Positions 8,201-51,600 of a stretch of 64,000 nucleotides of DNA are shown here, piece by piece. Where the stretch lies: NCBI RefSeq assembly GCF_036321535.1, contig NC_087464.1, positions 16,616,001 to 16,680,000 of the forward strand, given 5' to 3'. The notes below the pieces were generated by a model. That model saw only the letters and a list, made by a program, of their open reading frames with translations, was not told where the DNA came from and did not search any database. The DNA comes from Camelus dromedarius (taxonomy: Eukaryota). A program made the translations under genes and the position numbers. Numbering within the stretch: the first letter of the stretch is position 1; every line of letters starts with the position of its first letter.

Positions 8201-11076
8201 CTTGGAGTCACGGGGGCCTGGCTGTCAGGACGTGGGGAGCAGGGCCTGAGTGCTGTCCGTGTTGCAGGTGATGGCTGGCTGCACAAGGCAGTGAGCGTGG
8301 GCTCTGGAGTGCACATCATCGAGGAGCTGCAGATCTTCTTACCAGGACAGCCTGTGCAGAACCTCCTCCTGGACACTGACAGGGTGAGCAGGCAAAGGAA
8401 GAATCCAGGCGGAGTGCCCCCCCACTGCCCCAGCAAGATGGAGAGATCCAGGCTTATGGCATAAGCTATCAGCATGTGGGGGCCCAGAGCACGAGAGGAG
8501 GCCCCTTGGGGGGTGGCTTTGGTGGGCACTTGAGCCGGATGTGACTCTGGGTGGTGGCCCTGGCTGCCTGTGCCTGCCTCTTATCCCCCATGTCTGTGCA
8601 GGGACTGCTGTATGCTGCCTCACACTCTGGCGTGGTCCAGGTGCCCATGGCCAACTGCAGCCTGTACCAGAGCTGTGGGGACTGTCTGCTCGCCCGGGAC
8701 CCCTACTGCGCTTGGAGCGGCTCCCATTGCAGGCACATCAGCCTCTACCAGCCTGAGGTGGCCTCCAGGTGAGAGCTCCTAAAGGCTCCTCCCACTTGCC
8801 CATCCTTATGCACTAGGCTTCCAAGCGCCTTCCCTAGGCCCTCTGTAGAATCACCAGCCTCATTTGTGTCCACGGTCTTGGTGTAACTATCAGTCAGCTT
8901 CCCTTCCGACTCTCAAAAGTGTTGTAGTTCAGATTATGTTTGCCTTACCCATCTGTAAAGCAGGGACAAGGTTTGGTAAATTATGAAATGTTACAGTTAT
9001 GAAAAGCCTTGCAGGAGAATGTGGATTGGCATGTGAATGAGGTTAAGTAACAAAAAGTAAGGGCTATGTAATAGTCCGTTAACAAACCCATTAAAAATTA
9101 CTTTCAGGATCACTTATTTAGATTTAAAATATAGATTTAAAATATAGAAATCTTAGAAAATAGAAATAAGCACAAACAAAATAAAAACTACCCTAATCTA
9201 CCACCTACAGAGACTCACAGTGAGATTTTGATAAACATCCTCCCAGATTTTTCCATGTATGTGTAAAATAAAAAAAAATAAAAATGGGATCTGTCTCATT
9301 TGTAGTGTCCATGTTTCACTTGGAGATTCCAGTTCCAGTTTTATATTTCAAAAAACCAATATGAGTATACATATGTACACCTGAAGCGACACACCAAAAA
9401 ACGCTACCTGCCATTATCACTGCATGGTGGATTGTGATTTTTGTAATGTTGTTAGCCTTTCTGCTTGGTTGAGTTTTTCAGATTTCCTGAAAAACAAATC
9501 AGTGCATGTGCATTGCTTTAAAAGAGACAGACAGGGGAGGGTATAACTCATCTGGTAGAGCACATGCTTAGCATATACAAGGTCCTGGGTTCAATCCCCA
9601 GTACCTCCTCTAAAAATAAATAAATAAGTAAACCTAATTACCTCCCCCCAAAAAGTAAAACTAAAAAAATTTTAAGAGATACATACATTCATGCAGCTCC
9701 AGCTGTCCTTCCAGACTTTTTTTAAGGGCTCATACTGCTTTTTAAGTCAGGAAAATATTACAGTAACTTTTATTTGAATTAAGTACTGTGTGGATGGAGG
9801 AGATGCTAGCTCAACCCAGCGAGGTGGGGAAGCCATTTGCCTTTCACCTCTGCTTTGGGCCTGGTGGTCCCTGAGCCTTTCCCCAGGCCCGTGTCTGCAG
9901 GGCCATGTGAGGGCCTCCACTGTACTGAGGGTGGGGAAATGCAGGCTCATGGCGGGTTCCTGGCCTATCCTAGACTCTCTTTGGTTTTCAGGCCATGGAT
10001 CCAGGACATTGAGGGGGCCAATGCTAGGGACCTCTGCAACACTTCCTCCTCCAAGGGCCGATCTCCTGTAACAACAGGTAAGGTGTCCCATCTAAGGGTA
10101 GAGGAGAGGTGGGGCCAAGTCTGCCTAGAGGGCTCCTGCAGGCAGTGATGGGTATAAATGCCTTTCCTCACTTCCTCATCCTTCCAGCCCTACAAGCAGG
10201 GCCCTGGCAAGTGAGACCCACAGTCCTCGAAGTCCCCAGTGTTGCCGTCAAGAGTACAAGGAGCTGGGTGAGCCTGGGGATGCTGTGGACACCAGCCCCG
10301 CTATACCCTGTACTGTCCCTCTTCTGCCGGCAGGTGAGAAGCCATGCAAGCAAGTCCAGTTCCAGCCCAACACGGTGAACACCTTGGCCTGCCCCCTCCT
10401 CTCCAACCTGGCAACCCGGCTCTGGCTGCACAATGGAGCCCCAGTCAATGCCTCGGCCTCCTGCCGCGTGCTGTCCACTGGGGACCTACTGCTGGTGGGC
10501 AGCCAGCAGGAGCTGGGGGTGTTCCAGTGCTGGTCACTGGAGGAGGGCTTCCGGCAGCTGGAGGTCAGCTACTGCCCAAAGGTAGTGGAGGAAGTGGTGG
10601 CGGACCGAGCAGACCAGAGCGGCAGTGTGCCTGTCATCATCAACACATCCCGGGTGAGCGCGCCAGCCGGTGGCAGGGCCAGCTGGGGTGTGGACAAGTC
10701 CTACTGGACCGAGTTCCTGGTGATGTGCGCGCTGTTCGTGTTTGCCATGGTGCTCCTCATTTTATTCTTCCTCTACCGGCACCGGGGCGGCATGAAAGTC
10801 TTCCTGAAGCAGGGGGAGTGTGCCAGCGTGCACCCCAAGACCCGGCCTGTGGTGCTGCCACCTGAGACCCGGCCGCTCAATGGCATGGGCCCCCCTAGCA
10901 CCCACCTCGACCACCGAGGCTACCAGGCCCTGTCAGACAGCTCCCCAGGGCCCCGGGTCTTTACAGAGTCAGAGAAGAGGCCGCTCAGCATCCAGGACAG
11001 CTTCGTGGAGGTGTCCCCAGTGTGTCCCCGGCCCCGGGTCCGCCTGGGGTCTGAGATCCGGGACTCCGTGGTATGA
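2268..11076 (+). CDS. SEMA4B: Semaphorin-4B, 5'-partial (coding exons 2-14; the signal-peptide exon is upstream of the window)
   Basis: Exons, all AG/GT bounded and phase-consistent: 2268-2431, 2603-2665, 4158-4256, 4886-4997, 5267-5380, 5520-5671, 6470-6651, 6794-6944, 7967-8177, 8268-8383, 8602-8768, 9992-10077, 10334-11076. The translation gives a Sema domain ([13 protein letters not shown]...[10 protein letters not shown]...GRCPFDP), a PSI domain ([14 protein letters not shown]), an Ig-like domain, a TM helix and the C-terminal PDZ ligand EIRDSVV. Confidence 0.97.
3174..3790 (-). mobile_element. L2 LINE remnant (approximate bounds)
   Basis: Antisense L2 3' terminus (ttattcaataaaaatgtattaagcacctgctctgtgcc) and typical L2 body text. 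Confidence 0.65.
9534..9670 (+). mobile_element. tRNA-Ala-derived SINE (camelid vic-1-like) in SEMA4B intron 12
   Basis: A box (taactcatctggtagagc), B box (ggttcaatcc), A-rich tail with aacctaattacctcccc; degenerate TSD. Confidence 0.9.
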
Positions 11077-11986
11077 GAGCAGACTTCCAGAGGCGGCCAC
11101 CCTCTGGGGGCCGGGAAAGGTTAGAGGAGTTCGCTGGACCTCTACTCCTCATGGACCACCACCGTGGGGCCCAGCCCCCGGGAATGATGGAGCCAGCCGG
11201 CCTGCTGCCAAGTAGCGAGGCCCCCTCAGTGCCAGACGGCCATGGCCCCACAGGTCCTGGCTGAAGATGGGGGCCTGCCCAGGTGGGCAGAACAGTGCTC
11301 CTTATGTAAACTGAGCCCTTTGTTTAAAAACAGTTGAAAATGTGAAACAAGAGTGAGAAGAGTGAGAGACAACACAGGAGTGCCGCACACACAGCCAACC
11401 CGGTTCGCAGCCTCCCAGCCTCATGGGGGCCTTGGGCTCACCCAGAGTGGTTGCTGGAGACACCAACTGGCCTCTTCTACCTTCAGCCTTACCCTACCGC
11501 CACAGGCTGCTCCTTCTCACTGCAGAGCCGGGGCCAGCTGGGCTCCGGTGGGTCCTCCTGTGCCAGCTGGCCAGGTTGTTGCAGCTGTCATCCCGTCACC
11601 TCAGGGACCGGAGGGCCGTGCTGGCACCACAGCCCTCAGGAGGCTCTGGGCCTGGACCCACCTCCTGGACCTCTCCGGCCTGTATCAGGCTGTAGCCACA
11701 GGAGAGAGGGCAGTGTGAGCCCAGGAGAGAGTACGTGACAGTGTTCACCTTCCCTCAGAATTCCAGGAAGAGACGGTTGCCTGCCTTCCTCTATCCCAGC
11801 CTACAAACCTGTGTTCTTTTCCCCACACCCACCCTGGCCCTATCTTCAAACCCAGTCCCCCAGTTCACCCTGACACCCTGCCAGCCTCCACTCTAAGGGA
11901 TGTTGACACTGCCCTGAGCACAGGGGCCCTGAGTTTATGTGGGTTTTATATTTTTTCTAATAAGATGCACTTTACATTTTTTTTTT

Positions 11987-18759: not shown

Positions 18760-19910
18760 TCCTAGGTCCTTGGTCCCTCTCCCTGGGTTTTAATGTTATT
18801 CCAAATTTGTACCCAGCCCAGACCTTACCCTTGACCTCCAGGTTTGACTATCCAGCTGCTGACACCACTTCTCTTGGATGCCCAGGCTACATCTCAAACT
18901 CAAGAATCAAAACTGAACTCTTGATCTCTCTCTTCCTCTAGTCACCCTATCCCCACCCCACCTCCCCAGCCTCCTCACCTCTGTAAATGCCGCTGCTGCC
19001 GCACCCGCTTCCTGGAGCCGAGTTGCTCCCAGTTCTTCCCTTTCTGTCAGTCCCCAGAGTCAGCATGTCAGCAGGCCCTGTTAGTTCAGGCTTCAACATG
19101 ACCCATACCGCCAGCTCCTCTCTCTCTCTATTGCCATCTGTGTTGTCCAGTCACCCTCATCCCTCACCTGGCCTTCAGAGAGGCCTCCAAAATGGTCTCT
19201 GCTTCCCCTTTGCTCCCCCTACAATCCACTTTCCACACAACAGTTAGGAAAGGTTTATAAAATACCAGACGATCCTCATGCTTAGAACCTGCCAGTGATT
19301 TCTTACTGTTTAGAATAAAATCCATCTCCTGGGAGGAGGGTATAGCTCAGTGGTGGAGCATCTGCTTAGCATGCACAAGGTCCTGGGTTCAGTTCCTAGT
19401 ACTGCCATTTAATTAATTAATTAATTAATTAATTAAAAATTCCATCTCCTGACCAAGGCCCTGCAGCTAATCTGGCCTCCCCCTCCAGCTTCATCTGGGG
19501 CCCTCATCTCCCCTTTGTCAGCCACGCTCCAGTAACACTGGCTTGTTTTCTGTTCCTTGAACAGGCCGAGCACCTGCCCAACTCAGGGCCTTGGACTTGC
19601 AGTTTTCTTTGCCTAGAGCACACTTTCCTCAGCTCTTCACTGGGGGCCTCTTCTCATCCTTCATATCTCAGCTCAGCTGTCATCTCAGAGCCCTGCCCCA
19701 CCCTCTTGTAGATGTAGGATGCCCTGATCCCCCTCCTCTGTTGTATCACTTGTTTATTTCCCACCAAATGCTATCACCATGGGGAGTCAATGTGTTCCTT
19801 TTGCTTATCATCTGACTCCACCCCAGGATGTAAGTGCCATAAGGATAGGGACTTTGTTCTCCTTATTTGTGACCGTGTCCTCATTGCCTCATACACAGCA
19901 TTACTCCATA
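18760..19910 (+). mobile_element. L2 LINE remnant interrupted by a SINE (approximate bounds)
   Basis: C/T-rich L2 sense text (caaaactgaactc..., cagggccttggacttgc...). Confidence 0.6.
19332..19440 (+). mobile_element. tRNA-Ala-derived SINE with (TTAA)n tail
   Basis: A and B boxes; TSD tccatctcctg at 19321-19331 and 19441-19451. Confidence 0.92.
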
Positions 19911-20106
19911 AGTACTTGGGTTTTGTGGCTTAGCTGAACATGGAGCAGGGTGCCTGGAAGACGTGCCCCCAGAATGTCAGCAGTAGGGATGAGATAGGCA
20001 TTGAACCTGAATAAATTAATGAATGAATGAGAGAGTAAGTGAATACTGTCTTAAGTTTAGCTCAGCAAATTACTGGATTTCTGAAATCTATTTTGAGACT
20101 CACTTA

Positions 20107-20800
20107 AAATTTTTTTTAATTGTGGTAAAATTATATAATATAAAATTTACCATCTTGACCTTTTTAAAATTGTGGTTAAAAAACACTTAGTGTAAAATTT
20201 AACACTGTAACCATTTCTAAGTGTATAGTTCCATAGTGTTAAGTATATTCAGACTGTCTGGTAGCCAATCTCCAGAACTCTTTTCATCTTGCAAAACTGA
20301 AACTCTAGACCCATTAGTCAATAAACAATTCCTCAGTCTCACCTCCCCACGACCCCTGGGAACCACCATTCTACTTTCTGTCTCTATGAATTTGACCACT
20401 CTAGGTACCTTATATAAGTGGAATCATACAATTTTTGTCCTTTTATGGCTGATTTCATTTGGCATGATATCCCCAAGGTTCATCCATGTTACAGCATATG
20501 TCTGCATTTCCTTCCTCTNNNNNNNNNNNNNNNNNNNNNNNNNNNNNNNNNNNNNNNNNNNNNNNNNNNNNNNNNNNNNNNNNNNNNNNNNNNNNNNNNN
20601 NNNNNNNNNNNNNNNNNNNNNNNNNNNNNNNNNNNNNNNNNNNNNNNNNNNNCTTTGATACCCTGCTTTTAATTCTTTTGGAAGAACTATTTCTAAGTAT
20701 AGTTCAGTAGTGTTAAGTATTTTCACATTGTTTTGCCACCAATCTCTCGAGCTTTTTCATCTTACAAACTAAAACTCTATACCCATTAAACTCAGTTTGA
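20107..20800 (-). mobile_element. Old L1 (L1MB-like) 3' end fragments spanning the assembly gap
   Basis: Typical antisense L1M 3' UTR text (aaaatttaccatc...aagtggaatcataca...ttcatccatgtt). Confidence 0.7.
20519..20652. other. Assembly gap (134 N)
   Basis: Run of N. Confidence 1.
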
Positions 20801-21737: not shown

Positions 21738-22895
21738 ATGGCTATTTCACATGATTCAAATGAAACTTCCTATTTGCTACCTCCAAACACTGAGGACTGG
21801 GAAGGACACAACATTCCTGACTTTGTCTACGGGCAGAAGGAACTTGTGCCAGAAGGGATTCAGTGGCCGAGGAACACACCCAGCCTCCCAGACACACTGC
21901 CACTGTCTCGCTTTGACTCTGCACTCTGCTCGGCCTGGAGGCAGCGGATGGAACTGGGGCTGTTCCGTTACCGCCTAGGGGAGCTGCAGACCCGAACCCT
22001 CCCTGGTGCTGTGGGTTTTGTGGCTCAGCTGAATGTGGAGCGAGGTGTGCAGAGAAGGCGCCCCCAGAACATCAGGAGTGTGAGGCAGGCGTTTGACCCT
22101 GAACAGTTTAACTTCAATAAGATCCGGCCAGGAGAAGTCCTCTTCCATTTGCACCGGGAACCCGATCTCCCTGGTGTGCTCCAGCAAGAGGATATCCTTG
22201 TGGTGATCAACGTCAGCCCCCTGGAGTGGGGCCACGTGCTGCTGGTACCTGAGCCCGCCCGAGGGCTCCCCCAGCGCCTGCTGCCAGGGGCACTGCGGGC
22301 TGGGGTCGAGGCCGTGCTACTGAGCTCACACCCGGGCTTCCGCGTTGGCTTCAACAGCCTAGGTGGCCTGGCCTCGGTGAACCATCTCCACCTGCATGGC
22401 TATTACCTGGCGCACAGACTGCCTGTGGAGGGGGCCCCCAGCAAACCCCTGGACCCTGGGGGCCGTCTGCATCTGCTCCAGGCCCTCCCAGCTCCTGGCT
22501 TTCTTTTTTACACTAGCAGCCCAGGACCTGACTTGGAAGCCTTGATAAGCAGGGTCTGTCGGGCCACTGACTATCTGACTGACCACGAGATTGCACATAA
22601 CTTGTTTGTGACCCGGGGGGGCCCACCTGGAAAGACATCGTCTTCCTCAGCCCTTACAGGGGTCCGAGTAATTCTGTGGGCCCGGAAGCCCAGCTTTGGA
22701 GTAAAGGAAGGCGAGGCGTTCAATGTTGCCCTCTGTGAGCTGGCCGGGCACCTCCCTGTCAAAATGTCCCAGGACTTCAGCAGCCTAACAGAGGCAGCTG
22801 CTCTGGCTCTCATCCGAGACTGTCTGCTGCCCCCAGTCCAGGCAGAAGAGGTACAGGCAGCACTGGTAGCCTTGACAGCCCAGGAGGAGCAGTAA
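21738..22895 (+). CDS. GDPGP1: GDP-D-glucose phosphorylase 1 (385 aa, single coding exon)
   Basis: ATG at 21738 ([16 protein letters not shown]...EEQ*). HIT-like motif HLHLH is encoded at 22383-22397 (H216-H220). A splice acceptor lies 9 nt upstream of the ATG. Confidence 0.97.
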
Positions 22896-36954: not shown

Positions 36955-39900
36955 ATGGCTGTTGCTCTGAACCTCTTGCTGGGCGGGCGTGTACGTGCAG
37001 CGGTCGCTCGCTGTGGGTTCGCGACCCGAGGGGTGGCGAGCCCAGGCTCTATCGGCCGCGAGCCGGACCCCGATTCTGACTGGGAGCCGGAGGAGCGGGA
37101 GCTGCAGGAGGTGGAGAGGTACCAGCTCCTTCCCGGGCCCTCAGCCTGAAACAAGGCCTCGTACCCCGGCGCCCCAGGCCTCACCCTCTTGGCCCATAGG
37201 CGTTCTGCCGTGGCGTCCGCAGCGGCCCTTATTTCTCACCCGTTGTCAGGGGCGCAGAGTGTTAGCTCCCTTGGGACCACGGGTCCCTTCACCAGTGACG
37301 TATTTCATCGCCCGCTTAGAGAATTCGGCAGCAGCTTGTGGACTGCTGTTGTTCTAGGTGTTAGACTTACGGGGCGGTGTACTGAGCAAATCTGGGCTGG
37401 CTTATATGGCCAGGTTGCCCTTGCAAAGAGATGCGGGTTGGGCGCCCTGTGTTTAGCCCAAGGCTCTTAAACTACCCATCTAGCTTCCACGCATGGCTGC
37501 TGCCATTGGTTCTCTCCCCTAGAGCCCTGAAACGACAGAAAAAAGCCATCCGGTTCCAGAAAATTCGAAGGCAAATGGAGGTGCCAGGTGCCCCGCCCAG
37601 GACCCTGACGTGGGAAGCCATGGAGCAGATCCGGTAAGACTCTTGGTAGTTCGGATCTGCTGTGATGAGAAGTGAATGATATTGGGGCCTAAAACGCTGT
37701 TTTTATATCTTTTACTTTTTAGTATTTAAGATTTCTAACAGAAAAGTGAAATAAAACGAACTTCACTAAGACCCTCATCTAGGTTTAATAGTTTTTAACT
37801 TTCTGACATGGTTCATTTTTGCTGAAATTTTTAAATAGTAAATTGCAGGCGTCACAACATTTAACTCCTTTAAAGTAGATCATGACGTTCTTGACTAAGT
37901 TCCAGGGATGGAGCTTCCATGGTTTCATTTCTCTGAAGGGAGGATCCATATATTAGAAAAGAGATCCTTTTTTAAATGTGAAGTTTTTTGTTTTGAATAG
38001 GTAATATATTACATATGGCTCAAAATTAGAACAGTATAACATGACATGTATTAAGAAGTATTAATCCCACCCAATCTCCTCTGGAGACTATTTTAAATAA
38101 AGTTTTCTGTGTCATTTTCTAGGTTTCCTTATGCAAATACAAACAAGCAAGTATGAATATAAAATTTTATTTTCACTTCCTTGATCACAAACAGTGTAAT
38201 ACTATGCTGTTCTGCACTTTGTTTACTTAACATATTTTTACACTTCCCGAGAGAGCTCCTCATTCTTTTTTGTAGATGCACAGTAAACTGTAGTTTATTT
38301 TACCAGTCTTTTATGGTGGACACTTGGGTTGTTTCCACCCACGTGCTGTAACAAGTAGTGCTCTAGTGCATAACTTTGTATACACAGCATTTCACATATC
38401 TGTCAGAAGTCTTTGTACATTTCCAGAAGTAGGGTTGCTGAATCTAAGAGCAAATGGATTTGCCATTTGATAAATATTGCTAAGTAGCCCTCCATAGGTC
38501 ATGTACCATTTTTCCATTCCCATTAGAATGACTCTGGAATTGAGACTTAGAGTAAAGGGGATTCTGAGAGCTGATCAAGATTTTATGAGGCTGTAGCACC
38601 TTTGTCCTGTCAGCTTCCTCTCCTGTCTTGGATACCAGCTTTTTCAACGCTTACATCTTCCTACTTATCACCTCCCCTTTTGTGATCAATATAAATATCA
38701 TTTTATGACAAAGAAAAAAAAACAGACCATTAGGTAAGAACCGTTTAAAGTTTCTTGGTCTTCCTCCTTACCTTCCATTCCCATTACCTTACACTTTATT
38801 CACATCTCAGGGGAAGTGGTAGCTCTTCACTAGTCTAGAACCAATCCTCTGGGTTCTCTAGGTCAGATCCCTACCTAATTGATGACTGCCTCCATTTCAA
38901 CACCACTGAACTGAGCCTCAATAGGAAAATTTGCTCATGGCATTCTGCCACTTAAAATCCTTTCTTCACTGTTGCTTTGGGATAAACTCCAGAATCACTA
39001 AGCATGATACAATCTTGCTCCTTCTCACACTGTCACACAAGTTGAGCTGTTCCCAACAAAGGTGATGTACATTTTGTATTTCACATGCTTCTCACTCTGC
39101 CATTATTACCTTTGCTCTTCTTCCTCCCCACTCCCCTCTGCCAGCTTATTAAGGCTCAGCCTTTCAGACCAGCTCTAGCACAGACTTCCTGAAGCAATTC
39201 CTGGGCCACACTGCAAGTGTTGTGATAGCCTGTCCCTGGGTCTCTGAGTGCTCTCACAGCATCCTCTGCTGTGACACTTGTCATAGTGTTCTTACCTGTC
39301 TCCACCACCAGATTGTATGTTCTTTGAAGAGAAGGACAGTCTTCATGCATCCCCAGGTTTTAACTGGGGCCTGGTATGCAGTGGGAGGTGGTCAGCTGAT
39401 ATGAAATAAAGTTACTTGAGTGGCTGAGTATTGTCAGTGCACAGAAATGGAACACAGCCATTTAGTAGCACAAAATAGAGACTATGTTTGCAGTTTTTCC
39501 AAGCCCTCTTTCCATGTATTTATTGCTAGTATTATCAGTTAACTATCTTGATAGGAGACTTCACAGATTGAAAACCTGTTTCTTTTTTTCTTAGGTATTT
39601 ACATAAGGAATTTGCAGAGTCCTGGTCAGTTCCAAGATTGGCTGAAGGCTTTGAGGTCAGCACCGATGTGATTAGAAGGGTTTTAAAAAGCAAGTTTGTA
39701 CCCACATTGGAACAAAAACTGAAGCAGGATCAAAAAGTCCTTAAGAAAGTTAGGCTTGCCCCCTCGCTCCGGCAGCTCCCAGGCTCTGGGGTTACCTTGA
39801 AACCACTTTCTGCAGGCCATTCTGTATCAGGCTCTTTGCTGATGCCGGGGGATGAAGTCTCATCCAAAGGCCATGTTCACATCACAGCATTGAGAGTGAT

Positions 39901-40207
39901 CAAATCGAACACTCACAGTACAAATACACCAAGGAGACAGAAGGGAAGGAATAAAGGAATCCAGGGCCTGGAGGAGGAGAGCTTCATGCCTGTTACTGAA
40001 GCCCTAGGTCATCTGAGAGAGCTGCAGAAGTACTCCACCAATGATTGTGAGGGCACCAGGGCAACTGACTGTGATGGATGGCCGAGTGACAAGAAGCTGG
40101 AAGAGTTGAAGGCAGGGGAGCCAGATGACCAGAACTTTAGCAACAAAGTAGTACAAAGGGGGCGAGAGTTCTTTGACAGCAATGGGAACTTCCTGTACAG
40201 AATTTGA
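36955..40207 (+). CDS. NGRN: Neugrin (mitochondrial ribosome biogenesis factor), 295 aa
   Basis: Exons 36955-37118, 37523-37633, 39595-40207; MAVALNLLLGGRV...EPDPDSDWEPEERE...PPRTLTWEAMEQIRYL...FFDSNGNFLYRI*. Confidence 0.97.
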
Positions 40208-40677
40208 GCGGAACCTGGCTTGTGGTGATGCTTCTCGAAACACAGCTGAGCAAGTATATTTGGATCTGCCTGGATTTCTGTGGATGGATTATCCACCTTG
40301 GAATGGGGGGAAATGATGAGCCTGGAATGTGAGATGAAAGCTGCTTAGATCTGAACCTGACAAAGGGGAGAGAACTTCACAGAGCACATATGTATGGAAG
40401 AAGGGTGAGTGACTGGCTGGGTGGATTCCAGCCTCCTGGATCACTGCTCCTAGTCTGACCTGTGTGGATCTTCAGGATTTACCCTTCTTTCCTGGGCTCT
40501 TTGTTGAAACCAGCCTGTGTTGTGTTGCATGTGTTGTTAGGAGTTTTTGTGATACTTTCAGTATATGTTTGGGAGGAAATGAAAAATTTGCATTTTCACC
40601 TCATTTACTTTTTGATTAATGAACTCTTTAACAGTTCTGGAACTGCTTAGTCCATTGGTTGATTTCATTATGTGCGA

Positions 40678-40683
40678 AATAAA
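40678..40683 (+). terminator. Poly(A) signal AATAAA of NGRN
   Basis: AATAAA about 470 nt after the stop, followed by GT-rich sequence. Confidence 0.75.
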
Positions 40684-40856
40684 GTAAAATGTAGCAGTCT
40701 GTGTTGATTGGTGCTTTCTGGGTTTGGGAGGGTTTCCCTGTGAAGGGAAGGGAAGAGGCAAAGGGTCCCTTGTCTAAATATTGGGAGAGAGATGGGGCTA
40801 GAGGAACCCCCAACAAAGAGCTCTGTGCAGATCAGTCCTACTCAGTGATGGATTTT

Positions 40857-41025
40857 TTTTTCTATTAAAAAAAAAAAAAAGCTGAAGTAGAGTTGATTTT
40901 TAATGTTTCAGGTGTACAGCAAAATGATGCAGTTATATATAAATCTATTCTTTTTCAGATTCTTTTCCATTATAGGTTATTATAAGATACTGAATATAAT
41001 TCCCTGTTCTATATTATACAGCAGG
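40857..41025 (-). mobile_element. 5'-truncated L1 3' end with 16-bp TSD
   Basis: Antisense L1 3' text; TSD ctcagtgatggatttt at 40841-40856 and 41026-41041. Confidence 0.8.
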
Positions 41026-41100
41026 CTCAGTGATGGATTTTGACAGCTAAAAACTGGATATTAGGCCTTCCCTAAACACCCAATCTAAAGTGGCTACTCT

Positions 41101-41190
41101 GAGGAGGTGGGTATAGCTCAGTGGTAGAGCACATGCTTAGTTAGCATGCACATGATCTTGGGTTCAATCCCCAGTACTTCGTTAAAAAAA
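41101..41190 (+). mobile_element. tRNA-Ala-derived SINE (short tail)
   Basis: A and B boxes; TSD aaagtggctactct / aaagtagctcctct. Confidence 0.88.
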
Positions 41191-41504
41191 GTAGCTCCTC
41201 TTTTAGTTGCTAGGGCTCTGAAAGAGATTGGGGTATGGGGGTTTGACAAAACAAAAGAAAAACATGCAAAACAAGCAAAGACTTAAGGGCTCTCAACATA
41301 ATCTCTAGCCACTTCTAAAAGGTTAAGTATCTTACAGTTTTTATCAGATTTTTACAAAGGTATTGTGATTTGCACAAGAACAGCTGCTAGGCCCCCTTTT
41401 ACAAATAAGGAGCTGGTCTCAGGTTTTTGGATATGCCCAAGACCACACAGCTGCAAGTGAGTGACAGCACTGAGACTGCGGGACTTGAACTCAGTTCTGA
41501 TTCT

Positions 41505-41556
41505 CTCTTTTTTTTTTTTTAATTGAGTTATAGTCAGTTTACAATGTCGTGTCAGG
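41505..41556 (-). mobile_element. Extremely truncated L1 3' tip with 9-bp TSD
   Basis: Poly-T plus aattgagttatagtcagtttacaatgtcgtgtc; TSD tctgattct at 41496-41504 and 41557-41565. Confidence 0.7.
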
Positions 41557-42747
41557 TCTGATTCTTAATTCAAGGCTTTTAAAATTCCAGAAATCTAGCA
41601 CTGCCTGGCATAATTTCTGTTAATTTACTGATTGTTTTAGAAATACTTAACACTGGAAAGCGATTATCAATGGACCAATAGAATGAGACATGCAAGCAAC
41701 ATAAGAGTCCAATGACAGTTTTCAACGATGTCTCACTTTAACAATTTACCAACAAAAAATGGCTCAGAATTTGAATATATGAAGGATATTTAATGAAAAC
41801 ATTGATATTCCAACCCTGTCATTCCCTGTCTGTTCATGTATCTCACTGCTATTTCAAATGCTATTAATAGCAATTGCAACATCACTGATTACTGTTAACT
41901 TGAGTGTTCAGTAAAAATGGCAAGGCCCTATCATATGCCAATCAAAGTTAGAAAATCCACATTCTGGTAACAGCAGTGGACAGATAGGACCTTGTTATCC
42001 CTGCTCTGTCACTATCATGTAACAAACGTTTATCAGTATTTTTATGATTTTAAAAAAATGGTATTTTGCCATTAGAAACTTATAGGCATTTCGGAGGAGC
42101 AAGATGCTATTTGTTTAAACTTCCATTTATGACTCCTGCAAATTGTGCCCTTTCCCCAGGGGGCTATGGAAAATTAGAAGCTTTTATTGCAAGCTTGGAT
42201 ATGTTTTCCATTTGTCTCATCCCATACCATTCTAATGCTCACTAAGCTTAAATCTTTTTTTCCATTCTTGCAAATACTGGTCTTTTAAGGCTTTTGCATT
42301 TACTAATTCTTTGTCCCCAGATTTTCACTTGGCTTGCTCCTCGGTTCTTGTCATTCAGGTCTCAGGTCAATGTTGCTTTCTTAGGCCTTCCCTAATCACC
42401 CAGCTCCCTTCATGTTCTATCACCACACCTTGTTTAATTTTCCCCAGTATTTGAAATATATTACGACTGTATTATTTGTCATCACCCACCTTTCCCGCAT
42501 TACAAGGTAGATCCCATGAGTGCAGGAGACCTGTCTGTGTTCATTGCTGTAGTTCCAGCTCTCAACATAGATTTCAATATTGGTTGGGTGAATGAAGAAA
42601 TGAATAGGGAACTTGATACCTATCAGCTGGTCCACAATGGCAGAAAGCTGTGCATTTTACATTTGCCAGCCTACACATCCAGAACTCAGCCAGCAAGGCC
42701 TAAGCTTCCTGTAGGTCGACCTGTTCTTGTTCTGTCCTGTCCTGTCA

Positions 42748-43161
42748 CTGTGTCTCAGATCCTAATCCACCAGCACTGAGGTGTTCTGGGGAACTGTCCC
42801 CACTCCCACCCCCACAGCCCCAGCCCAAGCTGGGAGGCTGGAAAGGGGGAGGGAATCATTCAGCCTGTGTTCCACTGGGCCAGGGTCTTAGGACCCCATA
42901 GTGCTCTGTCCCCAGGCAGTCCTGTTTTAGGACATGATGAAGGACTTTGACACCACACTGGATGAGGTGGAGCTGCACTTTGGGGACACAGGTGAAGCAT
43001 CTGATGGAGGACGCAACAGATGACAAGGCAACATTGGACAAGACTGTGCCCAAGTTGGAGAGAAAGTGACTGGGTGGAATGGGCACCTCAGCAATCCTGG
43101 GGCCAAGCTCTAGAGGCTGCAAACTATAACAGAAGGGATTTAAGTCCCTCCACCCTTGAGG
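42748..43161 (+). pseudogene. HDDC3: Unprocessed HDDC3 (MESH1) pseudogene fragment: degraded exon 2 (~42748-42790) and exon 3 (42916-43161)
   Basis: The frame from acceptor ccccAG|42916 reads AVLF*DMMKDF-DTTLDEVELHFG (compare MESH1 AALLHDTVEDT-DTTLDEVELHFG). After frameshifts it continues QVKHLMEDATDDK..TVPKLERK*, NPGAKL, YNRRDLSPSTLE, ending GAG G|GT at 43161/2. Upstream VSQILIHQ resembles VARILTHE. Confidence 0.88.
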
Positions 43162-43809
43162 GTACATATGTCACTTATCTGCAAAGGGCCACTTCTACCT
43201 CTCTGTGCAGCTGAGATTCAAGCTAAGGAGGGGTGGGTAGGGGGAAGCTTAGTAAAAAATACCAGATGAGCTCTTGAACCCTAGTGTGAGCATAAGAGCT
43301 TTGTTTGTTTTTTGCTTAATCTATTACAGAAATTTTCAAACATTCAAAAGTAGAATATTGTAATGCAATGAACCGCTGTGTACCCATCACCCAGCTTTAA
43401 CATTTAACAAATGGCCCATCTTTTTTCATTATCCTGCATACTTGCCCCACATCTCCCCCTGGCTTATTGTAAGGCAAAGCCAGACATCATATTATTTAAC
43501 TGGTAAGTACTTCAGTATGTGTCTCAAAGAGATAAGGACTGCTTTTTAACATAGGCATATAAGCCATTACTACACCTTGAAATTTTTAGTAATTCTTTAA
43601 TATCAGCTAATCAGCTAATATCCTCATAGTATTCTGGTTAATTTCTTTGAATTGGGATCCAGACAATGCATCATGTCATTATGGCCCAGAAGTCTCTTTT
43701 ATTCTAAAGTGGTTTACCCTTCCACTTTCTTCTCCTTGTCATTTGACAGATCATTTGACCCATATAATTTTCTGCATTTTGGATATGGTTGATTTTATCC
43801 TTACAGTTT

Positions 43810-44395
43810 TTTTTTAACTTTTTTTATTGAGTAATAGTCATTTTACAATGTTGTGTCAAATTACAGTGTAGAGCACAATTTTCCAGTTATACATGAACAT
43901 ACATATATTCATGGTGTATTTTATCATATTCTAACTATTCCCTGTATTTCCTATGAACTAGTAGTTAGGTTTTTTTTTTAATTGAAATATAGTCAGTTTA
44001 CAATGTTGTGTCCATTTCTGGTGTACAGCACATTTCAGTCATACATATACATACATATATTCATTTTCATACTCTTTCATTACAGGTTATTACAATATAT
44101 CAAATATAGTTCCCTGTACTATACAGAAGAAACTTGTATACATATTTTATATATAGTAGTCAGTATCTGCAAATCTTGAACTCCCAATTTATCCCTTCCC
44201 ACCCCCTCCCCCACTGGTAACCATAAATTTGTTTTTTATGTCTGTGAGTCTGTTTCTGTTTTGCAAATAAGTTCATTTGTCTTTCTTTCTTTTCTTTTTT
44301 TGATTCCACGTATGAGTGATATCATATAGTATTTTCCTTTCTCTTTCTGGCTTACTTCGCTTAGAATGACGATTTCCAGGTCCATCCAAGATCTC
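43810..44395 (-). mobile_element. Two younger antisense L1 3' ends (about 43810-43910 and 43970-44395) nested in an old L1ME-like element
   Basis: Poly-T starts followed by attgaaatatagtcagtttacaatgttgtg...tcacttagaatga-like L1 3' text. Confidence 0.75.
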
Positions 44396-44789
44396 GAGGT
44401 TTGATCATGTTTAGCTCTCGGCAATGGGTGATGCTGTGTATTTCCTATGCATCTCACCAGGAGACGATGATGTGATGTTACCACTGATTAATGAGTTCAG
44501 ATATGTCAGCCAGATCTGTCCATTATAATATCTCTTACAAGATTTTTTCCCCAACAAGGTAGATATAGATCATTACCATCACTCCTGAAAATTCACTAAT
44601 TTTCTTCCCAATTTTCATTCCCAAAGTCAATCACTTTTCTGAAGTTTTTCTTGCTCAAGAAGCTGCTATAAACGGCATCATATACATGACACTCTCGTGT
44701 CTGGCTTCTTTCGTCTATTCAGTTATTTTTACTGTATGAACACGCCACAGTTTATTTATTCATTTTCTCACTAAGGGCATTAATGAGTG

Positions 44790-45602
44790 AAAATTCCGGT
44801 ATCCAAAGGTAACAGCTGGCGGGACTGCGCGTCCATTGGCTCCTAAGGCGTTCCTCTTCTCTCCCCTCACACCGGCCCCGCATCTTCATGCGTCTCGCCT
44901 GAGGTTCGGCCTTAGTTCGGAAGCCCTAGAGCTCCTGGCTGGAGGCTAAATTTGTGAAGTAGATTTGATTGACAGCCAAGATCCCCAGTGCTCGGTGCCC
45001 TCCGGACTCCGAGGTGGTTTCGTCCATTTCAGGAAGTTCTGAAAATCGAGCAAGTGCCCAACGCTTGCTTGAGTGAGGCAGGAGGAGAACTGGCGTACCC
45101 TTCAAAGTTAAAGACATAATCCTCTTTTGAAAGGAACGCTCGCCGCTATCCAGGTATGGGACTGGAACGATGACGCGTTGCCGCTCGTTCTGAAATGTCC
45201 CTTCCAGGACGCCGTCCCTTTCCCCTTACGCTAAGCGCTGGGCGAGCGTAACGGACTTCCGGGAGGTCTAGGAAGTCGCCTTTCTCTTTGGCTGGAGGCG
45301 GGTTTTTCTGCGGGTGCAGACCCGAATCCCGCTGACAAGCCGAGTGGACCGGGAGGGGCAGGACGGGGCACGGAGGCTGCAGGCCTGAGGCGAGGTCCCC
45401 TGAGGCTGCGGCTGCCTGACTGAGAGGTGGCCATTCATTCTTCGAGTGTGGCTGAGGAGCGAGGGCCCCTTCGGGGGCTCTTTCGAAGTCAGCTGCCAGA
45501 CCTGAAGGAGAACCACCCTGCGCTTACCCTGGGCCGCTGCCGGCCTTCTCAGAGTGGAGGGCACCCCACTTCTTCCACCCTGCGGCTGAGGTGACCGCTG
45601 CC
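44790..45602 (+). promoter_or_regulatory. VPS33B CpG-rich promoter and 5' UTR
   Basis: CpG-rich; ETS ACTTCCGG at 45255-45262; strong Kozak gccATGG at 45603. Confidence 0.75.
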
Positions 45603-48600: not shown

Positions 48601-51600
48601 ATTAAGCAGTTTTTCTTTTGGTGAACAGTATGAGGTACTAAACAGTGACTACCCTTATAGGGTAGATATAGGTAGCTGAGTTGAGTGGACAAAACAGGAT
48701 TGATAATGCTGTTTGTATTCTTTTTGAATTGTTTTATTTTTGGTTTCTCTTTTGGCACTTTGAGGAAGGTTCAGTGGGATGGTCATCAGGGAGATACCTT
48801 GTTCCTAGAATTAACATAAATGGGAGGGAGCCCTTCGAGAAGAGCCCTGTCTTTGTATCACACTTTGGGTTTCTAAGCACTTTTATATCCATTGTTTTGT
48901 TGGATTCTCTCTGTAGCAACATGAAGTAGACAAACTGTACAAAGTGGAGAACAAGCCAGCTCTCAGCTCCAGTGAACAGTGAGTATCTGGGAAGGTCTGT
49001 CTCAGCTCCAAGCTGGAGGAGGTCCCTGCACATTTGCCTTTCATGGCTCCTTGGCCAAGATCTGCACCATGATATTTGTGATACGGTTCACCTCCCTGCA
49101 CTTCTACAGTTTCATCCATTAGTTATGCTTTAGCCTCTTGATTTGTCCCCCTTCCTGCAGTTCCCCCCTCCCTTGTCTCTTCTCTCTAACCCAATCTACC
49201 ATCTTTAACCAGATTGATTAATCTTTCAAAAATATTTTCACTGTGCCCCTCTCAAGAACCTTCAAGGCTTCCTTTACTTACTGAGTGAAGTCCGCATCAC
49301 TCACCACAGATTCCCAGGCCGTCTCCAGGGAGGCCTCACACCCCTTTTCCAGCCCGGTCTCTCAAAGATGCCCTGGAGCTTGACTCAGTATGCGCTCTCA
49401 CGTGCTTCCAGTTCTGTGCTCATACCTCCATGCTTTTGGCCACTCTGACCACCCTGCCTGAAATTCTTTCCTATCTTCACTGCTCTTGTAAAAATACCCA
49501 GCCTTCAGAGCCCAGCTCCCCTCCTCCATGTGGCTCTTAGTTGCCATCCCAGGGTGATTTTCTCCTCCTCTGGATTTGCATGGGGTTTAGTGTTTGTCCT
49601 GTTCACTTGGCACAGTCAGTCACATACTGCCTGTTGTCTGTTTTCTGTTTTTATTTTTTATATTTCTCAACCTAAGTAATGTACACCCTCCCTTGGAGGA
49701 AAAAAGTTCTCCTAGATACATAGAGAATACATCCATGAACCCCAGTTTGAAAAGCATTATTTTATATACTTTCTCGTAATGTGTTTTTTAACGCTTGACT
49801 GTTAATCTACTCCATACATAGGTGCATCTTATTTTGCCCAATAGACTGTAACTTATTTGAGAGCAGGAGCTCCTGGGTCCACCATAGGGCCAACAAGTGC
49901 CCCCAGCTCACCCCAGTATACCTGTCTTATCAAGGGGAGTCTCCTATGGTTGATATGTGGTCGGCCAAGAGAGCTGGCATGGCTTTGGCTGGGGTGAGAA
50001 CTGTAGCAAGTGGTGAAAGGGTTGACATTGTTCCAGTTTCTACCAACTTCATTATTTTTCTTCATGAGGTTTTTTTTTTCCCTTCTCTCCCATAGATTGT
50101 GCTTCTTGGTCAGACCTCGCATCAAGAATATGCGGTACATTGCTAGTGAGTGTGCTGGGCTGTTCCATGTAACTGAGACCTGGGGAAGCATGGGAAGGTC
50201 TAAGGGCCTTGGCCGTAAGAACCCTTTAAAGAGAAAAGACTTGCTTGGGCTGGCCATCCCCCTTGTAGAGGCTCTCCACTTCCTTGCTCCTAGTCTAACA
50301 AGTGGCCCATGGCATTCTAGGTTGCATCCCTTCTGTCTGTAGGTCTTGTCAATGCTGACAAATTGGCTGGCCGAACTCGTAAATACAAAGTGATCTTCAG
50401 CCCTCAGAAGGTGAGTTTGGATCCTGGTGGGCATGGGATAAGATAGAACAGAATTGGGAACTGGGAAAGGGGAGGGGAAGGGGCCAACAGCTGTATCTCC
50501 CTCTAAGCAAATTATGTGTGACTGAACAAAATATCTGTCATTGTCTTTTCTTTAATGTAGTCCTGATCATTTAGCAGAGGGTCTGTCATCAAACTTCCCT
50601 AGATAAGATTGTGGGATTATGAGAGGTGGCATCTACATAGATTTCTTTTCTTTTCTCTTCTTTTCTCTAATTGAAGTATAGCAAGTTATAATGTGTCAAT
50701 GTCTGGTGTACAGCATAGTGTTCCAGTTATGCATATAGATACATATATTCATCTTCATATTCTTTTTCATTAGAGGTTATTACAAGATATTTAATAGAGT
50801 TCCCTGTACTATACAGAAGAAACCTGTTTTTCATCTGTTTTTATGCATAGTGGAGACTTCTTTAAATGAAAAGATTGACAGTTTTGAAGTAGAACCTACT
50901 ATGTATACCTTCTAACACAAATTCCTGTATGGTAATGGTACACAACGTTATGGCTTTTCAATGACTTTCTACCTATATCCCTTTAATAATAAGTATAATA
51001 AATCATCCCTCACCATGCTCCTCTAAGGCATGTGGCTGGGCTTTCCCTGGGTTGTTAGAACTATACCAGTGTACTTTGGAAAAACCTTTTCTTGCACAGG
51101 AAGGGAAACTTAGAGACCATTTTACTGTACCTGACTTCGAGTAGCTTAGGAAACTGAAGCCCACAGTCACACAGTGAGTTAGCATAGCCAGGCTAGGTTT
51201 CTTCCGTCTTTACTTCAATAACTGCAGTGTTTGGTGATCTATCAGAGTATCTCCGTTTCTCGATTCCATCGAGCTCCCCTCTCATCCCCACATCAGTGGG
51301 GTGCATCGTAGGTACATCCTCAATCTCATTGATTGGGAGGAATGATGTACCAAGCCATAGACCTATAAAAGCTATACCAAGCAGTGCATACCACACCTAG
51401 AGCAGGTAGAAATTAAACTGGAAAGCACAGGGATTTATTCCTTTGCTATTTTCCTAAGAAAATTCTAGAGAAAATAGCAGCAGGTAAGACTAAAGATGCT
51501 GAAGCCAAACTGTTTCAGTGTGAATCCTTGCTTTAGCACCTATTACCTGTGTGATCTTGGAAAAGTTATTTAACTGTTCTGTGTCTTAGTTTTCTCATCT

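Follow-up and report, generated by a model that had tools for sequence, protein, structure and literature searches.

HDDC3/MESH1 sequence between NGRN and VPS33B in the dromedary

The window, by which we mean the whole 64,000-nucleotide stretch of Camelus dromedarius DNA that was analysed, contains SEMA4B, CIB1, GDPGP1, TTLL13, NGRN (+), a decayed remnant of HDDC3/MESH1 (the relic) and VPS33B (+), in this order. The upstream neighbour of the relic is the last coding exon of NGRN (39638-40207, + strand), identified by an ORF 100% identical to Camelus neugrin. Downstream lies the CpG-rich promoter region of VPS33B (44400-45600, + strand), with a CpG observed/expected ratio of 0.63 in the 44-46 kb segment and colinearity with the start of pig VPS33B; VPS33B-like ORFs are found at 50010, 56149 and 61476, and the exons of this gene run beyond 61.7 kb. 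The relic occupies positions 42749-43161 on the + strand, 2.5 kb downstream of the NGRN stop codon and approximately 2.3 kb upstream of the VPS33B start, and consists of decayed exons 2 and 3 of HDDC3 with intron 2 between them.

MESH1 is the metazoan homologue of SpoT, a Mn-dependent (p)ppGpp hydrolase and NADPH phosphatase (PMC9894426, PMC7644958, bioRxiv 10.1101/325266). A preliminary description of this DNA, made from its letters alone, had proposed an HDDC3/MESH1 pseudogene fragment here and had assigned a set of signature strings to exon 3. All of these strings are in the sequence: three-frame translation of 42700-43200 gave DTTLDEVELHFG at 42949-42984, with ATDDK, VPKLERK, NPGAKL and NYNRRDL downstream in shifted frames. 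Human MESH1 (PDB 3nr1) was the best PDB match for two colinear stop-free pieces of the relic, covering residues 61-79 (E 0.004) and 77-100 (E 0.15); 3nr1 and 5vxa were the top matches of the relic pieces, each piece being marginal when taken singly. A PDB search with a third piece (43005-43211) returned chance matches only, and Pfam assigned no domain to nine stop-free relic pieces, which were too short.

Searches with entire proteins and at the DNA level bore out the proposed identity. Real MESH1 protein queries were reached via the ORF of the better-preserved elephant relic, while a region-restricted search from the mouse-lemur relic ORF yielded no MESH1 candidate. The tblastn search of the 64-kb window with these proteins, which the preliminary description had put forward as a check, gave four colinear segments corresponding to MESH1 residues 23-46, 56-79, 79-101 and 105-136 and mapping to 42696-43160, with summed E values of 1e-9 to 6e-9, and no significant MESH1 match elsewhere in the window. 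Blastn of the Camelus ferus HDDC3 gene against the NGRN-VPS33B interval of the window (40208-45000) produced a single match, 69% over 289 nt (E 5e-27), the alignment beginning 88 nt inside intron 2. An nhmmer profile of seven orthologous relics, built from the relic copies plus 1.3-1.5 kb of flank per side, had a single match on the C. ferus HDDC3 locus (L009 10387-10816; E 1.6e-73). This match extends from 20 nt before the end of intron 1, through exon 2, intron 2 and exon 3, to the GTA that opens intron 3. The relic derives from MESH1 residues 38-137, including the region of the HD motif. No remnants of exon 1 or exon 4 were detected by tblastn on the window, by searching peptides of eight species against eight intervals, or by searching the relic profile against four functional loci.

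We conclude that the fragment is a real, non-functional, unprocessed HDDC3/MESH1 pseudogene of approximately 440 bp. A functional gene of the Pfam HD_4 family would have an ORF over four exons encoding approximately 179 aa. The relic, although it shares its origin with residues 38-137 of the enzyme, cannot encode that enzyme: exons 2 and 3 alone are present, and they carry two stops and several frameshifts.

Exon-intron structure of the relic and lesions in camel

The relic begins with the 3' end of intron 1 (42725-42748, + strand), a polypyrimidine tract and acceptor site delimited by the nhmmer match, which starts 20 nt upstream of the real exon 2 (L009 10387), and by multi-species alignment. 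A stretch resembling 'YPVSV' is this tract and acceptor rather than the start of exon 2; exon 1 of the real gene encodes the PIG residues. In the camel relic the acceptor has changed from AG to AC. Exon 2 follows at 42749-42789 (+ strand), as seen by tblastn (residues 23-46), nhmmer and alignment; it measures 41 nt against 56 nt in the real gene, and its donor GT has become GG. The remnant of intron 2 (42790-42915, + strand) is 126 nt long, whereas that of camel HDDC3 measures 110 nt; the blastn alignment takes in 88 nt of this intron. Exon 3 (42916-43161, + strand) corresponds to MESH1 residues 57-137 and was delimited by the PDB search, tblastn, blastn, nhmmer and alignment. It keeps both flanks in camel, AG at 42914-42915 and GT at 43162-43163.

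The intact flanks of exon 3 had been noted in the preliminary description, as had an exon-2 remnant about 125 nt upstream, which was found at 42749-42789, 126 nt from exon 3. The same description had regarded the fragment as a genomic duplicate rather than a retrocopy. This stands, since the relic has kept an intron 2 homologous to that of the real gene, and the DNA alignment suggested as a check (HDDC3 exons 2-3 and intron 2) gave a colinear match that includes this intron homology. A processed pseudogene was ruled out because the relic has, besides intron 2, the final 20 nt of intron 1 and the donor of intron 3; as the profile match takes in the end of intron 1, intron 2 and the start of intron 3, the relic is a DNA-level copy.

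The lesions listed from the letters were all found. A TAG at 42928-42930 (+ strand) replaces the codon for His61 of the HD metal-binding motif (His61-Asp62), the catalytic His of the enzyme. This stop was seen in camel only among the seven species sampled; the corresponding codon is CAT in the relics of pig, elephant, lemur and armadillo, CAC in panda and CAG in zebra. The claim that the HD motif is destroyed thus holds for camel, but not as the founding lesion, because the change is a late one of the camel lineage. At 42986 (+ strand) a 1-nt frameshifting insertion, again in camel only, is evident from alignment with the six other relics and the real genes: the camel relic reads GGGGACACAGG, whereas the others read GGGG-CACAGG. 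Positions 43028-43042 (+ strand) are a 15-nt imperfect tandem duplication of 43013-43027 (12 of the 15 positions identical), which is confined to camel and is without counterpart in the six relics and four functional genes. Finally, a TGA stop at 43067-43069 (+ strand), also in camel only among the species sampled, takes the place of CGG in the real gene and of TGG in most relics.

The living camel HDDC3 gene

The functional camel gene used for comparison is that of C. ferus, a species of the same genus as the window. Intact HDDC3 is located there between UNC45A and MAN2A2 (locus L009), with exons at 10001-10112, 10407-10462, 10573-10813 and 11115-11245. The spliced coding sequence specifies an intact 179-aa protein, 169 of its 179 residues being identical to a fur-seal MESH1. 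The preliminary description had raised the alternative of a unitary gene loss should intact HDDC3 be missing elsewhere; the intact gene between UNC45A and MAN2A2 in Camelus rules this out. In Tamandua (anteater) the functional HDDC3 likewise adjoins UNC45A, and the two genes are arranged head-to-head in both camel and Tamandua. Judging from human gene order together with the strands of the C. ferus locus, the relic and HDDC3 would be in direct orientation, approximately 60 kb apart.

The deposited C. ferus protein (P0162, 199 aa) runs from exon 3 into intron 3 (10814-10881) and then uses another acceptor. Canonical splicing between 10813 and 11115 of L009 yields the usual 179-aa MESH1, and the 199-aa model looks like an annotation error.

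Shared lesions and neutral decay across placental mammals

VPS33B lies 5-8 kb downstream of NGRN in pig, zebra, panda, elephant, mouse lemur, armadillo and field mouse. Inspection of this orthologous interval in other mammals, another proposed check, recovered the relic, colinear and alignable, in six further placentals (pig, zebra, panda, elephant, mouse lemur and armadillo). In the murid Apodemus only a weak trace of approximately 100 nt is recognisable (L008 17046-17157), a short remnant that fits the faster neutral decay of rodent genomes.

Lesions were compared in an alignment of seven relics and four functional genes (camel, anteater, possum and echidna). Two deletions, one of 14 nt in exon 2 and one of 4 nt in exon 3, are common to all seven placental relics (camel and the six others), and placental lineages other than camel carry independent frameshifts and deletions of their own. 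The two shared frameshifting deletions indicate that the gene was already dead in the ancestor of Laurasiatheria, Euarchontoglires, Afrotheria and Xenarthra. Exon 3 had appeared open in the multi-species consensus of the relics; alignment with the functional genes overturned this reading by revealing the shared 4-nt deletion.

This age bears on the suggestion, made from the camel letters, that the fragment is the fossil of an old local duplication or rearrangement at a breakpoint interval. The event is old, and the relic predates crown placentals. We found no link to the human inversion breakpoint, the NGRN-VPS33B adjacency being intact in all non-human species sampled, including lemur.

The relic evolves neutrally and has no present function. 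Minimum changes at codon positions 1, 2 and 3 of the relics number 73, 61 and 63 (p 0.56); the corresponding figures for the four functional genes are 24, 18 and 70 (p 1.6e-10). Terminal branches of the relics measure 0.09-0.19 substitutions per site, and their stem branch 0.17. Pairwise comparison across orders gives a mean identity of 0.72-0.79 for the relic, and the neighbouring non-HDDC3 sequence at 42260-42730 is equally conserved.

We considered whether the fragment has been co-opted, either spliced as an exon into a non-coding or read-through transcript or acting in the regulation of VPS33B or NGRN. Such a role might be read into the AG and GT that flank exon 3 in camel and several other species, and into the level of identity retained across orders. 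However, the even spread of substitutions over codon positions, terminal branches in the neutral range and the equal conservation of the adjacent sequence argue against it, as do the loss of the donor in lemur and armadillo and the large deletions in pig. Some runs guessed to be RNA hold 46-93% of the sampled words of the relic, but libraries confirmed as RNA-Seq hold only 5-15%, and neither word share can be interpreted alone. We regard co-option as extremely improbable.

Position of HDDC3 in a marsupial and a monotreme

The NGRN-VPS33B side of the comparison was extended to one marsupial, the brushtail possum, and one monotreme, the echidna. Possum has an intact HDDC3 flanked by its two neighbours (NGRN - HDDC3 - VPS33B, all +). 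Echidna has the same order and strand, again with intact HDDC3. Tblastn searches confirmed the NGRN exons of the two species and, in possum, an exon of VPS33B. The camel relic (NGRN - relic - VPS33B, all +) therefore occupies the position and orientation of the living possum and echidna gene, while functional placental HDDC3 is at a locus that is not syntenic with it (UNC45A-MAN2A2 in camel, beside UNC45A in Tamandua). Since the living HDDC3 of possum and echidna lies in this very interval, the relic would most likely be the decayed original. The preliminary description had placed the functional gene beyond VPS33B and taken the relic for the fossil of a local duplicate. The UNC45A-MAN2A2 location of the living gene agrees with the first part; the direction does not, given the possum and echidna gene in the interval of the relic.

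The opposite direction deserves consideration in its own right. HDDC3 might always have been located between UNC45A and MAN2A2, and exons 2-3 might have reached the NGRN-VPS33B interval by a partial local duplication whose daughter copy died there. Under this reading the functional parent with homologous introns would lie a few genes away, as it does, and detection of exons 2-3 alone is as expected of a partial copy. However, the living gene of possum and echidna sits in the interval of the relic and in its orientation, and the reading would then need either two further moves to one spot or a move in the mammalian ancestor that was later reversed. We judge it very unlikely.

Living placental HDDC3 keeps all three introns at the positions of the marsupial and monotreme genes, which indicates that the living copy was made from DNA and not from mRNA.

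NCBI labels the gene 'MESH1-like' in three marsupials, and among the matches listed there is one MESH1 protein per marsupial. We rejected orthology of the relic with a second living marsupial paralogue, because marsupials have ordinary MESH1 proteins and it is the possum gene itself that lies in the NGRN-VPS33B interval. The names are plausibly explained by lost synteny with human, that is, by non-positional orthology.

The NCBI models at these outgroup loci fuse TTLL13 and NGRN, giving products of 1068 aa in possum (L010 1-1573) and 1050 aa in echidna (L012 1-8079) that carry both TTL and Neugrin Pfam domains; the two genes are separate in the placental loci. Either read-through annotation or a real fused transcript would account for these models.

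Relationship of the relics to living HDDC3 genes

A tree of the relics with HDDC3 orthologs, also proposed in the preliminary description, was obtained by maximum likelihood (ML) from exons 2 and 3 (297 columns) of the seven relics and four functional genes. It recovered the seven relics as a monophyletic group (100/100), joined to the placental functional genes to the exclusion of possum and echidna (94/95). Other features of the sequences point the same way. The relics share the placental-derived LDEVELHFGAQV, where marsupials have LEEVEEHFGAEV, and the relic-consensus intron 2 is 70-71% identical to that of placental functional genes and approximately 51-54% identical to that of possum and echidna. 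The relic profile scored 237 bits on the camel gene, 175 on anteater, 80 on possum and 57 on echidna. With moderate confidence, these sequence comparisons place the relics and placental functional HDDC3 as closest relatives, the possum and echidna genes lying outside.

Within this group, the ML tree nests the relics with the camel functional gene instead of placing them outside both placental functional genes (94/91), which conflicts with the presence of the relic in armadillo. The expected topology, with the two placental functional genes as sisters, was not rejected by the approximately unbiased (AU) test (p 0.06). This suggests that the nesting reflects composition bias, a long-branch effect or old gene conversion; we take it for noise or compositional bias. 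The Tamandua HDDC3 gene is richer in GC, and differences in GC content are a possible cause.

These results also bear on an older duplication with reciprocal loss. Both loci would then have been occupied in the therian or mammalian ancestor, marsupials and monotremes keeping the NGRN-VPS33B copy and placentals the UNC45A-MAN2A2 copy, and the likeness of the relics to placental genes would be due to conversion before their death. The long stem branch of the relics could be taken in favour of this, as could the nesting with the camel gene, which hints at a signal that is not tree-like, and the 'MESH1-like' label in three marsupials. However, the AU test rejected a functional therian clade without the relics (p 0.0027) and marginally rejected a clade of relics and possum (p 0.037), and the relics share both placental-derived residues and an alignable placental intron 2. 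The label carries little against the single MESH1 protein per marsupial among the matches listed, and plausibly stems from the lost synteny with human. Reciprocal loss is in our estimation unlikely.

A proposed relocation of HDDC3 on the eutherian stem

Taking gene positions and sequence relationships together, we consider it quite probable that the relic is the decayed original HDDC3/MESH1 at the ancestral NGRN-VPS33B site and that the living eutherian HDDC3 is a relocated duplicate. It is likely that HDDC3 was copied at the base of Eutheria from between NGRN and VPS33B to a head-to-head position with UNC45A, together with a promoter containing a putative CTCF motif, and that the fossil was kept in every placental sampled. 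We infer the direction of the move by parsimony, and its timing likewise indirectly.

Under this proposal, the whole gene would have been copied as DNA on the eutherian stem, after the marsupial split and before the placental radiation, with its introns and proximal promoter kept. The copy would have landed between UNC45A and MAN2A2, a few genes away and probably in the same orientation. The new copy would have kept the function. The original would have been inactivated and would have decayed neutrally until exons 1 and 4 could no longer be recognised, leaving in every placental sampled approximately 440 bp that run from the end of intron 1 through exon 2, intron 2 and exon 3 to the donor. The camel lineage would later have gained the His61 stop, the +1 insertion, the 15-nt duplication and the TGA. 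As for mechanism, a small dispersed duplication would fit, as would a tandem duplication of the HDDC3-to-UNC45A block and a subsequent deletion that removed the redundant copies from VPS33B to UNC45A.

The promoter is represented by GGCGCCAGGGGGCGCTGTG and close variants, which are found 60-130 nt upstream of the HDDC3 ATG in camel (L009 9914-9941), possum (L010 ~9913-9939), Tamandua (L011 9880-9960) and echidna (L012 9880-9960), and are doubled in Tamandua and echidna. We presume from its resemblance to the CTCF consensus that this is a putative CTCF motif. Its conservation across the relocation suggests that the daughter carried the proximal promoter.

Comparison with known systems and significance

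Gene relocation through duplication, with the original silenced, has precedent. In the human pair DPY19L2 and DPY19L2P1, it is the pseudogene that shares synteny with the mouse gene, the functional copy having moved (Carson, Cheung and Scherer 2006, PMC1475853). As proposed here for HDDC3, the ancestral copy was silenced and its descendant is active at a new locus, which amounts to gene relocation. However, the DPY19L2 event is recent, primate-specific, placed within low-copy repeats and between chromosomes, whereas that of HDDC3 would be approximately 100-160 million years old and probably intrachromosomal over a few genes, with no detectable flanking repeat and exons 2-3 left. We found no literature report of an HDDC3 pseudogene at NGRN-VPS33B, of HDDC3 synteny, of HDDC3 relocation or of an NGRN/VPS33B inversion, and the HDDC3 case is unreported as far as we found.

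The relic resembles an ordinary unprocessed pseudogene in keeping its intron and splice-site positions, in its frameshifts and stops, and in having a functional paralogue in the genome. It differs in that such a pseudogene is usually the new copy, whereas here the relic would be at the ancestral position and the functional gene would be new. Like a unitary pseudogene, it has a living positional orthologue, the gene of possum and echidna; unlike one, it is accompanied by an intact paralogue of the same gene that keeps the function in the genome. There is also a likeness to orphan retrogenes, in which a retrocopy replaces its parent, the daughter taking over the function while the parent decays. 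The daughter HDDC3 would likewise have taken the function from a decaying parent, but the living gene keeps all three introns and was made from DNA.

The interest of the relic is in its history and not in any function. Placental HDDC3/MESH1 would not be the positional orthologue of the marsupial and monotreme gene, a point that bears on synteny-based orthology calls, and the new head-to-head neighbourhood with UNC45A on the eutherian stem may have altered the regulation of MESH1. The case would offer a clean and datable example of relocation by duplication and silencing, a process invoked in models of hybrid incompatibility. As a fossil of approximately 440 bp and more than 100 million years of age, the relic would further be a fixed marker in the NGRN-VPS33B interval, which was later split by an inversion in the human lineage; if this history is correct, the fossil could help to place later breakpoints such as that of the primate inversion.

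Flanking sequence

Immediately upstream of the relic, where the old intron 1 and exon 1 would be expected, positions ~42430-42625 of the window hold a stretch that ends in TCAATATTGGTTGGGTGAATGAAGAAATGAAT and that we take, by resemblance, to be the 3' half of a MIR-type SINE. It is common to camel, pig, zebra, elephant and lemur. Elsewhere in the window, a run of 134 Ns (20519-20652) falls inside the GDPGP1 region. On the downstream side, the counterpart of the camel VPS33B promoter (window 44391-45487) is present twice in giant panda, at 19205-20297 and 21751-22813 of locus L004, approximately 2.5 kb apart; this doubling is either a tandem duplication or an assembly artefact.
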